From positions 168,153 through 224,906 of the forward strand of contig NW_005434629.1 of the NCBI RefSeq assembly GCF_000315625.1: a stretch of DNA of 56,754 bases. The letters run 5' to 3'. The notes beneath the pieces are model-generated. The model saw nothing but the letters and a program-made list of their open reading frames with translations, had not been told where the DNA came from and made no database searches. The stretch comes from Guillardia theta CCMP2712. Taxonomy: Eukaryota > Protista > Cryptophyta. Both the position numbers and the translations under genes were made by a program. Positions 2,480 to 54,600 of the stretch are shown one piece after another. Every line of letters begins with the position of its first letter. Position 1 is the stretch's first letter.

Positions 2480-2519
2480 CCTCTCCTGTGGTTGAGTAAA
2501 TATTTTAAAAACAGCTCCG

Positions 2520-3110
2520 TAGTCCGGAAGCAGTGGGCCCTTGAACTTCGGAAGGCGGCCGCCGGGCCCGGCACAGGGCCTCAGGCGGCCGGGCCCCCGC
2601 TTGTCACTTTGCGGCCGCTGCCAACCAACACTGCCGCTCCTGCCTCCGGCCGCTGCCTGTCGAACGCCGCCCGGCCTCTTTCCGACGGACAGTACGGTAA
2701 ATTCCTCCGAACTTCGGAATCGGAGGCCCCTCGCGGGGCGAGCGGCCTGGGCGGCGCCGGCCCCGTCACGGTGGAGCTTGAGTCAGTCTGGCCGCCTCAG
2801 CGCCACCGGCGTACGGTAGCGAGTCAGGCTGGGGCCCGGCGGCCGCATCCCCGTGGTACCGTGACAATGATGGTCATGACCCCGCGATGATAGTACACTG
2901 ACGGTACTGTACGGTATGTCGGGACCGTCGGACACTGCGGCATGATGTCGGGAAGGCCATAACTTTCAAAGGTACTCAGGGTGACTGTATGAGGGGCTGA
3001 AAAAGGCTCTCCTACCACTAACGGGGGCAAGTTCGGGACCGCGGACGGTTCCGACGAGAGGCGCCAACACAGTAGCCTCCCCTTCGTTTTCACTGTCACT
3101 GTCACTCAGC
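2520..3110. repeat. CGG/CCGG-rich intergenic island (degenerate repeat DNA)
   Basis: Dense GCCGG, CCCGG, ACGGTAC, GAGTCA and GAACTTCGGA words shared with the other islands in the window. Confidence 0.6.
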
Positions 3111-4399: not shown

Positions 4400-5240
4400 G
4401 AAGGCCACGGTGCGGTATGAGGGGCGGTGCGCTCAGTACTGACAGTGACCGCGGTGACTGGCGGCCCGCCGGGCCTCAACCAGCCTCGGACACATTGTTC
4501 ACAAGTTCACTGGGCCTTCTCAGACCAACCTTCCATTGACCATCAACACTTCAAGTATTGTCAACACAGACCAATCCGGTGACCGGCATCATGTGATAGA
4601 GAGAACCCGGCGTTCAACGAACGCTGTACCGTCGCACGTGACGGTACTACGGTAGCGAACTGACTGTAGTGTCACCGACGGCCCGGTGTGCAGCTTGGTA
4701 CTACGGTAATAGACTTCCGAGAAAAGAGAAAGAAAGACTCTGAGCGAGAGAAGAGTAGGGGGGAAGAACTTAGAGGGAGGAAGACAGGTAGAAAGACGAG
4801 ATTTGAGGACTTGGGGAGACCCCAAACTTATACTATGATCAGTAGCATTCACCAGGGGCCAACACACCCCGACTCCGGGATGGTTCCTCTGGTCATCTGA
4901 TCCTTTCCTCGTCGCTTCTGCCGCATTCAACTTGCAACCTCGAGCCCGTTAGAATGCTAAAGTAGAGAACATGTCTTGAAAGTTCTTACAAGCCTGGCCG
5001 AACCGTTCTTCCCTGCCGGCAGCCGCTCAGCCGCTGCACTCGGAGGCAGCATCGTAACGGTGGGCCGGCGTCACGGTCGCATTCAAGCCATACATACGCG
5101 GGCACAGGTGATGAAGAGGGAGAACGTGACGCAGTGACTCACCGGGGCTCGTCGCCTCAGTCACCGGTCATTGTCCTCATACTGATTTTTAACTTAACTT
5201 GACCGGGATAGAGGTCACCGGTGTCCAGTCAGAAGGAAGC
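4400..5240 (-). mobile_element. Degenerate repeat island, possibly an LTR-retrotransposon relic (PPT-like tract plus TGTTGG boundary)
   Basis: 4644-4730 resembles the reverse complement of 23250-23345 (GTACTACGGTA...GACTTC.GAGA.AAGAG followed by an AG-rich tract). The minus strand reads GGAGTCGGGGTG|TGTTGG at 4876-4859. Confidence 0.4.
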
Positions 5241-5245
5241 TATCA

Positions 5246-5630
5246 CCAGTGCAAAGTTGGTCATCAATGGGGGTAGTCCAGTGCAAAGTTGTGTTGGTCA
5301 TCAAGGGGGGTAGTCCAGTGCAAAGTTGCTCATCAAGGGGGGTAGTCCAGTGCAAAGTTGCTCATCAAGGGGGGTAGTCCAGCGGTGCAACGTTGCTCAT
5401 CAAGGGGGGTAGTCCAACGGTGCAAAGTTGGTTATCAATGGGGGTAGTCCAGTGTAAAGTTGCTCATCAAGGGGGGTAGTCCAACGGTGCAAAGTTGGTC
5501 ATCACTGAGTCAAGGGGGGTAGTCCAACGGTGCAAAGTTGGTCATCAAGGGGGGTAGTCCAACGGTGCAAAGTTGGTCATCAAGGGGGGTAGTCCAACGG
5601 TGCAAAGTTGGTCATCGAGCGGGGTAGTCC
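5246..5630. repeat. 32-35 bp minisatellite, 11 copies (CCA[ACG]GTGCAAAGTTGGTCATCAAGGGGGGTAGT)
   Basis: Head-to-tail copies directly visible, with no unique spacers. Confidence 0.95.
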
Positions 5631-5845
5631 TAAACTAGCAAACCTTTTAGGGTAAGGTTCCAGCTGACTCAGTACTGCTATCTTCTGTATGAGATGTAAA
5701 ACTTCTGTACCATGAATTTTTTCTCTTGGCTCAAAATAAGATGCCCATGTGTACCGTTCACCTGAAAAGATGGTACAAACATGCTTTCATAAGGTACAAA
5801 GAAACTTCAGGAGAGCCCCGCCCAGCTACCAGAATCTTGCGAACG

Positions 5846-7196
5846 ATGAGAGGAGCAGGCACCAGACATCTCTCAGTCCTCGTGCTGCTGTGCATGACAG
5901 GACTGTCGCCGTCAGATGCGCTGTATGAGGGAAAGAGTGAGATGTTTCAAGAAGATGCTTTCCTTGGCGGCAAGTACATCCAGCTAGGGTTCAGGCCTAC
6001 AGGAAAGCTAGGAACCGATGTGCAACCTGCTGACTTGTACACCCGACAAGGTAAGCCCGTTCACGCGCCTTGTTGTGCACTTTGAGCTCTCTGACATGAT
6101 CTCTCCGCAGGAGCATGGGCAGGAGGGATGAGTCTTCTCGGGGATGCCGATGGCTTCGGAGAGGGAGCAGACCTGCGGATCGATTACTTCCTGCCTGGAT
6201 CACCTGCGGAAGGTATGTCGCCCTCTTGCCTAGCTGCCATGCTCGGCTTGCTGCAGTGAGTGACCATGCCCAACACCAGGCTTCCGTGCCGGGTACAGAC
6301 TGTCTGGGAACGGTACTGTGCACGAAGGAGACAATTTCGGGCATTTTGTTTACAACGCGTCCAAGGATCCATACCTGTCGGCGGTGACAGTCGCTATGCT
6401 GGGGGATCTTTCGGTTGAGATAGAGACCAGCTTTCAACCCCAAGACTTCTATTTCCTCACGAGAGCCAAACTCAAGAACACGGGCTCCAACACGCTGGAT
6501 GACGTGAGGTACATGCGGTACGCGGACCCTGACAACACGGTTGACATGGGAGGAAGCTTCACCACCATCAATGAGATTCTCTGCAGCCGAGGTCTTGGCC
6601 AGCCATGCAGCGCGATCTCCGCCGAGAGCTACGGGGCCGACGACCCTTATTTGGACGTGAGCGGAAACAAGACCGCTGTTGTCTTCTACTACACGACAGA
6701 TGATCGTGCAAGGTTGTTCACGGGAAACTGGGGTCTGAGCATCTACGATCCACATGTATATGACAACGCTCTCAACTCCATGTACGAGATCCAGGATGGG
6801 ATGATTTACATCACGTTCGATGTCGGAAGCCTTGCAGCAGGGGAGGAACAAGTCGTCGAGTACTACACGGTTGCGGGGTTCGGTCCTCCTCGCGCTCTGC
6901 TGCGGCAGTTCGAGTCGAGCATCGCAGGAGGAGGCAAGTGTGAGCTGACACAGACATGGGGAGAGATCATCGGTCACTTGACTCGCAACGACGGCAGCTT
7001 CACCACGGGAGGGATGGGGCAGTTGATGACGGAGTCTCATCAGGTGTGGGTATGTCAGAAGCTTCACTCATGTGCTCTTGAGCTTTCCAAGGTTGTCAAT
7101 GACTCCTACTGCTTCGTCTACAATGAGAACACGACCATCTTTGAGCCTTGGGGGCTCAACTCAACTCTCAACCTACTCAGACCACCGTCTCATTGA
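5846..7196 (+). CDS. Secreted protein with a domain resembling bacterial extracellular/surface proteins
   Basis: Signal peptide MRGAGTRHLSVLVLLCMTGLSPSDA. Introns 6051-6110 and 6213-6279 (possibly also 7044-7091) join FLGGKYIQLGF..GKLGT, DADGF..RIDYFLPGSPAEGF and DVRYMRYADPDN into one reading frame. Confidence 0.8.
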
Positions 7197-22288: not shown

Positions 22289-22745
22289 CCTCCTGTCCTT
22301 CAATCAGCTTGCATCTTGATTAAAAATCCGCCATGGGCACGTCGGAGATTGCTAATGTCCGTTGCAGAAAAAAATCTGATTCACAAAACAAAAACAAAAC
22401 AAAACCTTCACCGCTTTATGCTAACAACAACTGGTGTTGTCTACAACCCCAAACCTCACCTCTACTTCTGCGAGCAAAGACTGATCGATGTATATCTATC
22501 TATCTGCATATCATCATCTATCTACCTCTCTCCTCCTCTCTCCTCTCCTCGCTCACGTCACCTCTACACTCATTTCCCCTGAGGCTGTCGGTTCTCCCTG
22601 CGCACACCGCATCCCCGTTACACATCCGTTACACTCGTTATGACAGCATGGCCGCCTCACGGAGGAGCGGCTCAGCGGCTGCGGCCTGCCGCAGTGCCAG
22701 GCCCGGGCACGGCCGTGCCGCACCGGCCCGATAGTCTGGAAGGCT

Positions 22746-23030
22746 AAGACATTGACAATCGATGATCAGGCTGCAATCTGCATTGCAAAGAATCCAGGAA
22801 AAAAGAGTTTGGCTAAACCCATTGACATCAAGAGGTTGCGGAAGTTTCCTAAGACAACTTGTGGAAGAGAATACCCCGGGCCCGGCGTTAACGTACAATA
22901 TGTACAGACTCGGACCTCGAAGACGGTTCAACGGTTGGCTGATCGGACCGGGAGTCATGACAAAATCACTCCCAGATCGGACTTGCCGAGCCCACTGACA
23001 GTGAAAACTTGTGACTGAGAAATTGTAACT
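22746..23030 (+). mobile_element. Degenerate Ty1/copia LTR-retrotransposon pol fragment (RNase H C-terminal half)
   Basis: Removing short insertions yields TLTIDDQAAICIAKNPGKKSLAKPIDIKLKFLRQLVEENTVNVQYVQTSKQLADVMTKSLP, which matches the copia RNase H consensus DNxxAIxxAxNP..KHIDI..FxR..V....V.YV.T..QLAD..TK.L. Confidence 0.85.
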
Positions 23031-23079
23031 GTTCTGGAACGGTACGGTACTCCATTCCGACTATTCGATGCAGGAATGA

Positions 23080-23900
23080 CGGACCATTTCTTTTCTCTCT
23101 CTCTTTCTTTTCTCCTCATTCTCTCTCTCTTCTCTCTTCCCGGAGTCCTTCTCACTATCTCTTAACCTTTTTCTTTCTCCTATCCCGGCCCCCCGAGTCC
23201 TTCCAGTCTCTGTTCAAGTATCTTCCTATCCTTGCTCTGCTTATAAATACTCTTATCTCAGAAGTCAATCATACTAGTAGTACCTACAGTACCGTACCTC
23301 AGTGCTCTACTAACTTCCGACTACTCAGTGCATACCGTAGTACAATCCATCACCCGGTGGTCTTGCCGGCGCCGGGCGGCCCGGCCCGGTTGCCCGCAGC
23401 CCCGGCCCCGGCCCCGGGCCCCCCGGGACTCGGAGGGGCTGGCACTGATCGAACGGAACGGCGTGCCGGGCCCGGGTCTCAGCAGCCTGGCCCTCTCATC
23501 GGATCCGAGTCACGGCGATGTCACTCCTGGAACTGTCTGATAATTAGCTTAACTTACTTTGAGTAAACTTGACTGGAGAGATCAGTATCACGGTACGATT
23601 ATTACTCATCAAGAAGGTAGATATAACCATGGGCTACGATGACAGGGCTGGGCCCGGGGGGTCGGAACTGGTTTTTAAAATGAAAACCCCGGGAGACCCC
23701 TTCACATGACTGGGGAGCTCCCACGATAGGAGGGGTACTTCTTTGCCCATACTGAGGGGCACCTGTCACTGCCAGGTTCCGCCGCCGAGCGAGTGTGTAG
23801 GCCCGGGGCCGCAGCCTCTTCGAGTCGCCTGTAGTAAACCGAGTTATAAAATTGTACCAGGTACTGAAGGAGCCGGCGTGATACCGGGAGATGCCGATCC
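23080..23900. repeat. Possible LTR remnant (CT-rich tract, TATAAA near 23242) followed by a CGG-rich island
   Basis: Directly downstream of the copia RNase H relic; 23250-23345 resembles the reverse complement of 4644-4730. Confidence 0.45.
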
Positions 23901-53689: not shown

Positions 53690-54600
53690 ATAGGGTGGGG
53701 TGGATGACCGTCGAGTCATTACAAGGGTACTTTAGGGAATTAAGGTGGGTCATATCCGAGGCAAACTGAACTGAGGGGGTGGGGAGGGGGGGGGGAGAAG
53801 GGGGCGCGGTCGGATGCGCAGGCTGGAACTTGAAATGAAAAGTAATCTTTTCGAGAGAGGGTGTCATCGGTCCCTCGAAGATACCGATCTCTGGACCCGA
53901 AACAGATCCGTTTCGTGCACAGGGGATGGATGCTACAACCTTATAGTCTGCGAAATGAGTCCCTCCGGCAACGGCTCGGAACCCTCCCACTCACTGATCG
54001 TTCTTTTACTTAACTTTGAGTAAACCAGATCGGACGGTCGTAGAGCGTTGGGGCCCCTTCAGCCCTCACACGCTCACTGCCAGTCGTCACGCGTGAGTAG
54101 AGCCTCGGGCCTTCAGCCCTAATACGTCCAAGCCTTGGGGGCCCTCCCTCACAGCGGCCTCACCGAGTCAGCCGTCCCAGTGTGAAAGTCAAACTTGAAA
54201 GTTTCCCCTTGCCACGCTTTGACGCTGTGTGGGCAAAACTGCCCGCCGCGCTGACTGTCACAAGCCCCGGTGCGTTCCGCCGCGCCCGCCGGCGGCTGAC
54301 GTTCACAGACTGTGTAGGAATTAACTGGCACGGGGGGTCAAACTGCCCTGAGGCTGAGGCCCACTGAGTCCGGCCCTGAAAGATCGGATGACCGCCGAAC
54401 TTCGGAACAAACATGCCACACTAGCTGATTTTTAACTTAACTTTGAGTAAAGAGCGGTCAGGCGACCGGTTGAAGGGTTGGCAATTTTCTTTCTTGCACT
54501 CTCTTGGTTTTTCGAGCCTCCGAAGTTCAACTTCGGCACTCAGTCAAATTTAAATAGGGGTGTACTGATTTTTCACTTAACTTTGAGTAACTTAAAAAGG
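53690..54600. repeat. Repeat island with three copies of the CTGATTTTT.ACTTAACTTTGAGTAA motif
   Basis: Copies at 53993-54024, 54424-54451 and 54564-54590 among CGG-rich sequence. Confidence 0.65.

Follow-up and report, generated by a model that had tools for sequence, protein, structure and literature searches.

Short insertions in a dead Copia copy of Guillardia theta carry C-spaced inverted copies of their flanks

A dead Ty1/copia retrotransposon in the cryptophyte Guillardia theta CCMP2712 is broken up by many short insertions, several of which contain CGG, and it raises the question of what kind of process adds such bases to decaying DNA. The element lies in a stretch of 56,754 nucleotides (nt) of contig NW_005434629.1 (assembly GCF_000315625.1, positions 168,153 to 224,906 of the forward strand), hereafter the window, by whose numbering positions are given unless another contig is named. 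The original prediction, made from the letters of this DNA, had proposed a sequence-biased process that targets repeats and adds CGG words to them. Comparison of the relic with its relatives in the same genome confirmed that the process is patterned and strongly insertion-biased, but what it adds is not a CGG word: it is a C and an inverted copy of the flanking bases, often closed by a G.

A truncated Copia copy with near-intact relatives

A search of 87.1 Mb in 669 contigs yielded three full-length relatives of the relic on contigs 3, 46 and 97 (C3, C46 and C97), each about 6.4 kb long and bounded by long terminal repeats (LTRs) of 393–402 bp that are 99.7–100% identical within each pair. The C3 copy carries open reading frames (ORFs) of 1,537 and 311 amino acids (aa), and the RVT_2 domain of the full-length copies scores 158–200 bits. 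All copies were compared with one another only, and neither a consensus nor a repaired reading frame of the element was used. In the alignment to these three copies, window 22727–23349 corresponds to element positions 5513–6380, about 870 bp at the element end, and frames 2 and 3 of window 22746–23030 hold pieces of the Copia RNase H tail. The stretch is a dead, truncated Copia copy that consists of the RNase H tail of pol and the 3′ LTR. It belongs to Ty1/copia by DNA homology to full-length two-LTR gag-pol (RVT_2) elements; of the parts that would make it complete (5′ LTR, gag, protease, integrase and reverse transcriptase) the window holds a fragment with three internal deletions.

At aligned bases the relic and the C3 copy share 453 matches and differ at 11 of 464 positions (about 98% identity). 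The relic, which reads on the forward strand throughout, begins with a pol fragment at 22727–22748 (C3 positions 5513–5534 of 6,380 bp), at whose left edge, 22727, the contigs of the other copies diverge from the window. A 133-bp deletion (between 22748 and 22749) separates this fragment from the RNase H tail of pol at 22749–22970 (element 5668–5839, with 8 short insertions), and a 172-bp deletion (between 22970 and 22971), with which the end of the ORF and 27 nt at the start of the LTR were lost, separates the tail from the 3′ LTR remnant at 22971–23349 (element 6012–6380, with 12 short insertions). The third deletion lies inside the LTR after 23084 and measures 76 bp in the multiple alignment. 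The earlier statement that the relic aligns without any deletions was therefore wrong.

Into this sequence are set 20 short insertions of 3–15 nt, 140 nt in total, with a GC content of 64% as against 41% in the remaining relic. None of them is present in C3, C46 or C97, so that the insertions first read from the relic alone are real and the full-length members of the family are free of the inserted bases. They are also found in independent read sets and are thus not an assembly artefact: raw 38-nt reads from chromatin immunoprecipitation sequencing (ChIP-seq) of 2026 cover 22851–22973 at about 10–17x in total, at an identity of at least 95% and with no indel call, and contigs from a 2021 run (spanning 22400–22794 and 23242–23600) and a 2011 run (spanning 22400–22794) show no differences.

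Inserted bases copy the flank across a single C

The insertions follow a common rule. After a native word X the insert reads C-X′, often followed by G, or else X′-G stands ahead of X, where X′ is the reverse complement of X; the two arrangements are one event read on opposite strands. Three forms occur, a minimal form X-CG-X, a half form X-C-X′(-G) and a full form X-C-X′-G-X that includes a short direct repeat. The rule was scored on 86 polarised insertions of 2–17 nt from two Copia families and one minisatellite, for which pairwise calls were used in place of a strict 'private column' multiple-alignment approach that split events with common columns.

A C- or G-spaced inverted arm of at least 2 nt was found in 55 of the 86 events, compared with 8.3 when the inserts were shuffled and 7.2 when flanks were swapped (maximum 16 in 1,000), and an arm of at least 3 nt in 23, compared with 1.6 and 1.9, respectively. 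A mirror-spacer control (G/C, of equal composition) gave 11 and 2 events for the two arm lengths, and A/T spacers gave 2 and 0. The rule is obeyed by 16 of 20 insertions in the window copy, by 12 of 24 in other copies of its family (family A) and by 26 of 40 in the second Copia family (family E). Such inverted flank copies are what these events have in common with templated fold-back; palindromes with no spacer are not enriched (23 observed, 25.7 in shuffles). Arms measure 2 nt in 32 events, 3 nt in 16 and 4 nt in 7, and none is longer, and the direct repeat is 0–3 nt and usually absent. Bare CG or CGG-type additions make up 8 of the 86 events, and slippage or tandem duplication accounts for one exact and one near-tandem case. 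CGG itself is present in 40 of the 86 events, a frequency explained by the first letter of the duplicated word, which is G in 18 of the 33 full forms (P = 0.0008). A CpG is created by 41 of the 86, which looks incidental.

Two other sources for the inserted bases were considered and set aside. A search of both strands within 150 nt for exact templates gave a modest excess only, mostly of matches between one insertion and another. An offset hairpin would make the spacer C complementary to the native base that follows, which it mostly is not, judged by eye over the listed events.

The insertion bias seen in the relic holds across copies. Among insertions and deletions (indels) with well-matched flanks, 66 insertions stand against 17 deletions at 2–20 nt, and 1 insertion against 14 deletions above 20 nt. 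In a 21-copy LTR alignment of the relic's family, 14 other old copies carry private short insertions, many of them GC-rich, and family E (reference copy on contig 29) has private insertions of the same kind. An older full copy of family E on contig 85 has 85 substitutions, 14 insertions of 1–6 nt and 9 deletions, 8 of which remove 13–179 nt, and short fragments of this family have 1–4 substitutions and 2–6 insertions each; because the substitution counts include subfamily differences, insertion-to-substitution ratios drawn from them are approximate.

Within the relic the rule can be followed from site to site, again on the forward strand. The original prediction had listed seven items whose net lengths agree with six stretches between 22838 and 22954, although their boundaries have shifted; the insertions at 22758–22764, 22977–22981, 22994–23003 and 23008–23013 and nine further ones in the LTR were absent from its list. 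At 22758–22764 the 7-nt insertion ATCGATG places the inverted copy GAT and a G ahead of native ATC. The 7-nt insertion GCGGAAG at 22838–22844, formerly read as an AGG, a CGG and one extra base, places AA and a G ahead of native TT. The 11-nt insertion CCCGGGCCCGG at 22875–22885, which includes a 10-nt perfect palindrome, had been placed exactly. A 6-nt insertion at 22907–22912, rotation-equivalent to the CGGACC listed before, yields the full form GA-C-TC-G-GA. What had been given as ACGGTT and CGG are nested insertions within 22924–22933, CGGT (4 nt, 22924–22927) and CAACG (5 nt, 22929–22933), the latter placing CAAC and a G ahead of native GTTG, and the full-form word GTT-C-AAC-G-GTT stands at 22926–22936. 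Likewise, CGGACCGGGA resolves into two 5-nt insertions within 22941–22954, GATCG (22941–22945) and GGGAG (22950–22954), each an inverted dinucleotide and a G ahead of its template.

In the LTR remnant, the 5-nt insertion TCGGA at 22977–22981 sets TC and a G ahead of GA, and two insertions follow within 22994–23013, one of 10 nt (22994–23003) that creates the palindrome CACTG-A-CAGTG and one of 6 nt (23008–23013). At 23070–23083 lie GCA (3 nt, 23070–23072) and CGGA (4 nt, 23080–23083), of which CGGA gives the minimal form GA-CG-GA. A 7-nt insertion at 23141–23147 yields the full form TCC-C-GGA-G-TCC (23138–23148), a 15-nt GC-rich insertion occupies 23183–23197, a site at which copy C18 has a different 15-nt insert, and the 5-nt insertion TCAAG at 23214–23218 reads TT, then C-AA-G. 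The last four insertions crowd the LTR end within 23270–23343 (23270–23280, 23287–23298, 23326–23329 and 23336–23343); the word TAC-C-GTA-G-TAC stands at 23333–23343, and 11 nt of the 12-nt insert at 23287–23298 are an exact inverted copy of LTR bases 23041–23051, 247 nt upstream.

The signature in unique non-coding DNA

The full form with an X of 3 nt is an 11-mer that can be counted without an outgroup. The window contains 17 of these words, as against an expectation of 1.0 under a second-order Markov model (maximum 5) and a mean of 1.3 per pair over the 15 alternative spacer pairs. Flanking DNA from fetched loci (46 kb) contains 16, and 51 kb of young multi-copy transposable element (TE) DNA, from at least 7 near-identical elements, contains none. 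All but one of the 17 window words lie outside ORFs of at least 150 aa, which cover 43% of the window (P = 0.0009). Genome-wide, GAACTTCGGAA is present 974 times and AAGCCTTGAAG 322 times, compared with 137 and 138 for their mirror-spacer versions and a uniform expectation of about 42. In sum, the polarised data come from two Copia families, and the outgroup-free data from about 155 kb and the two 11-mer counts.

Unique intergenic DNA carries the signature as well. The GC-rich stretch at 2500–3100 contains full-form words with unrelated flanks, for example at 2543, 2557, 2709, 2834 and 2923, and looks to have been built largely by the same insertion process. In a minisatellite of 32-nt units at 5249–5630, for which no TE homology was found, one unit has gained an 8-nt insertion on the forward strand at 5497–5504 that gives TCA-C-TGA-G-TCA (5502–5512). 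Because full-form words occur in unique intergenic DNA, the process is not repeat-targeted, and the relic insertions are a local sample of a genome-wide insertion process in non-coding DNA generally, not in repeats specifically. The repeat targeting originally proposed is not supported, for the signature fills unique intergenic DNA and a minisatellite unit and is missing from the young multi-copy TE DNA; nor is it, in the manner of fungal repeat-induced point mutation (RIP), confined to repeated DNA and directed at multi-copy elements. Window-wide 4-mer, 6-mer and palindromic 4-mer statistics showed no excess of CCGG or of palindromes, the k-mer signal being invisible at this scale because the window is mostly genic.

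In the same minisatellite, a 3-nt CGG-type insertion has spread to 6 units, and another unit has a 5-nt tandem duplication.

A proposed break-repair origin and its rivals

We put at roughly 60% the probability that the relic gained its about 20 insertions and 3 larger deletions after integration, and that the insertions are products of a genome-wide break-repair process in non-coding DNA that adds a C and a fold-back copy. The most likely mechanism would be an error-prone end joining in which short-staggered breaks gain one C and a hairpin-like copy. We suggest that a break with a 5′ stagger of 0–3 nt would be filled in, giving the direct repeat, and that each 3′ end would gain one untemplated deoxycytidine (dC) and fold back, or be hairpin-capped and reopened 2–4 nt from the tip, before end joining. 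Additions at the 3′ end would then come in the order C, inverted copy of the last 2–4 nt, often G and sometimes a direct repeat of 1–3 nt, where the G would be the C added on the opposite strand. The C-then-G bracket is identical on both strands and so fits one C per 3′ end of a two-ended break, a direct repeat of at most 3 nt is what filling in a short 5′ stagger would leave, and an inverted arm of 2–4 nt across one base agrees with off-centre reopening of a capped end or with turn-around synthesis over a very short distance. By analogy, arm lengths of 2–4 nt would resemble hairpin-opening distances. CGG enrichment and, on this reading, the GC-rich intergenic blocks are by-products of the insertion process. 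Encoded in the genome are a single PolX (contig 27, about position 565,000), a Ku-like exon and about 5 loci for family-A polymerases, none of which discriminates between models.

Several points weigh against break repair of this kind. The mechanism is read from the sequence pattern; 22 of the 86 events fit no rule, and a G follows the arm in only 40% of arms. The snap-back synthesis at breaks named in the original prediction comes close to the mechanism preferred here, but single-stranded DNA that merely anneals to itself cannot yield an inverted copy over a single-base spacer, and for this reason the snap-back chemistry known so far does not fit in its present form. Event density differs more than 10-fold among copies of similar divergence, with 13 events in the window LTR where about 3 are expected (P = 6 × 10^-8), and several sites have been hit independently in different copies: family-A LTR position ~388 (window ~23326) and family-E LTR positions ~110, ~185 and 353–366 carry different insertions in up to five copies, with no obvious motif shared among these sites. 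Neither the spread in density nor the recurrent sites are predicted by a uniform random-break model. All of this, moreover, is drawn from a single genome, from about 260 kb of its sequence and the counts of two 11-mers.

It is possible, if doubtful, that a dedicated end-processing route is at work, in which tailing with a single dC and hairpin capping and reopening of broken ends yield small palindromic products that become preferred break sites, so that the process feeds itself. If true, this would account for the hot loci, the recurrent sites and the period-8 arrays described below, would build GC-rich intergenic blocks, and would mean that the genome grows by an engine other than transposons, one that leaves a legible signature in the sequence.

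Head-to-tail repeats of GAACTTCG with a period of 8 were seen on contig 2 (1010912–1010938), contig 1 (1152097–1152115) and contig 8 (16651–16669). The full-form product appears to have been re-hit or expanded into micro-arrays there, and the arrays suggest repeated events at a regenerated site.

Other origins of the insertions have to be weighed against break repair. Replication-coupled template switching requires no double-strand break: at a nick or stalled fork, a polymerase would use the displaced or nascent strand as template for a few bases before it switched back, leaving direct-inverted-direct micro-duplications. The order X, X′, X is the expected product of a double template switch, the 11-nt inverted copy from 247 nt away shows longer-range switching, and period-8 tandem arrays of the full-form word also agree with such an origin, which we nevertheless hold to be unlikely, because a one-strand process gives no reason for C-then-G spacers that are the same on both strands and because half forms without a direct repeat dominate. 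The bracketing C and G could alternatively be excision footprints of a cut-and-paste transposon with 5′-C...G-3′ ends and a 3-bp target duplication (CACTA-like), whose flank hairpin would keep one transposon base. Direct repeats never exceed 3 nt, no full form with k = 4 occurs within the window, two inserts read CACTG-N-CAGTG, and elements of the hAT, MULE and Transib families are known to form hairpins on their flanking DNA (PMC5499845). This origin is improbable all the same: not one of 107 polarised insertions is an occupied site, the sole insert longer than 20 nt being a tandem duplication; most events have no target duplication or one of 1–2 nt rather than one of fixed length; an end that lacks its duplicate cannot retain the transposon's G; and 20 cycles of insertion and excision within 620 bp are implausible. 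The genome gave no Transposase_21 match, a weak negative given that control genomes gave none either.

That a genome-defence system recognises silenced repeats and inactivates them by CGG-containing words is very improbable. The relic does have far more events than sister copies of similar divergence, and any such event in coding sequence would inactivate; however, the signature is equally dense in unique intergenic DNA such as 2500–3100, the GC-rich flanks of the relic are single-copy, it is missing from the 51 kb of at least 7 near-identical multi-copy elements, and the rule is flank-templated and not a word. Hardly credible, finally, is an origin before integration, in dead-on-arrival copies made by reverse transcriptase, or in assembly or sequencing artefacts. 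Reverse transcriptase adds untemplated C and snaps back, and the riddled copies also have large internal deletions, but the same events occur in one minisatellite unit and in unique intergenic DNA, and the window insertions are present in three independent data sets (2011, 2021 and 2026).

Relation to known mutational processes

In the neutral DNA of most studied eukaryotes, small indels remove more bases than they add. Here small insertions exceed small deletions by about 4 to 1 and arise in dead TE copies at a rate comparable to substitutions, following a rule precise enough (X-C-X′-G-X) to be read without an outgroup. The rule offers a testable handle on an end-processing chemistry of single-C addition and fold-back, and an explanation for the GC-rich, CCGG-laden intergenic DNA of this genome. 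It also calls for caution in annotation, as TE relics and pseudogenes are broken mainly by patterned insertions that defeat ordinary frameshift-tolerant alignment. An enzyme behind the pattern, if found, might be of interest as a natural marker of break sites.

RIP in fungi makes C-to-T changes, depends on duplication and acts premeiotically. It resembles the process described here in leaving dead TE copies with a recognisable mutational signature, whereas the present signature is insertional, flank-templated and independent of duplication. Bacterial Ku/LigD end joining fills in overhangs and adds a single untemplated nucleotide, and 5′-overhang fill-in plus a +1 addition would yield the minimal form X-CG-X; to our knowledge, no inverted arm has been described for it, and we know of no dC preference. 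Short template-switch mutations reportedly explain clustered changes in primate genomes (work attributed to Loytynoja and Goldman, 2017). Like the events in G. theta, these make or perfect small hairpins by local inverted copying; they are rare, and for the most part exchange one sequence for another over a few tens of bases, whereas the events here add bases on balance, are bracketed by C and G and arise at a rate similar to that of substitutions.

The closest relatives are fold-back insertions at breaks, known from Pol theta-mediated end joining and from yeast foldback inversions by Pol delta and non-homologous end joining (NHEJ) (PMC11724301, PMC11292364, PMC4912351). As in our data, these leave short inverted copies of break-adjacent sequence at the repair junction and occasional longer-range copies. 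Known fold-back primes on an inverted microhomology that is already there, across a loop of several to tens of nucleotides (41 nt in yeast), and no fixed spacer base is reported; here, in contrast, copying sets in right at the terminal base, with no microhomology as primer and over a spacer of 1 nt that is C in 55 of 86 events, and the signature dominates the germline small-indel spectrum. P nucleotides arise from off-centre hairpin opening at V(D)J coding ends (PMC2175297), and flank hairpins accompany excision of hAT, MULE and Transib elements (PMC5499845). The 2–4-nt arms fall within the length of P nucleotides, which are palindromic additions of 1–4 nt that invert the terminal bases, but P nucleotides abut their template directly, whereas here a C intervenes and the class without a spacer is not enriched. 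No known relative among fold-back, P nucleotides and flank hairpins has a fixed single-C spacer or dominates the germline indel spectrum. We found no prior description of the signature in the literature, only related mechanisms; our coverage was incomplete, and prior work may exist.

Flanking blocks and other copies

The relic is flanked by GC-rich unique blocks. The left block (22640–22726) contains two full-form words (22670 and 22687), and the right block (23350–23500) belongs to no repeat family. A repeat family or small mobile element as their source was rejected, both blocks being single-copy, and we read them as older, piled-up events of the same insertion process. Two older internal Copia fragments elsewhere (contig 28, 565421–565737, and contig 66, 158542–158722; L031 and L042) stop abruptly in GC-rich CCGG-type blocks that resemble those beside the relic.

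Near-identical LTR pairs and long open frames are found in both Copia families (contigs 3, 46 and 97; contigs 29, 4, 22, 206, 70 and 57), and both have probably been active recently. On contig 75 (420794–421614), two family-A LTRs that share their orientation and have identical left flanks are separated by about 130 bp, a tandem LTR arrangement. A word of about 30 nt common to window 5170–5200, 54425–54450 and 54562–54591 and to the flank of the contig-3 element (L022, 479–517) may be a small dispersed repeat.
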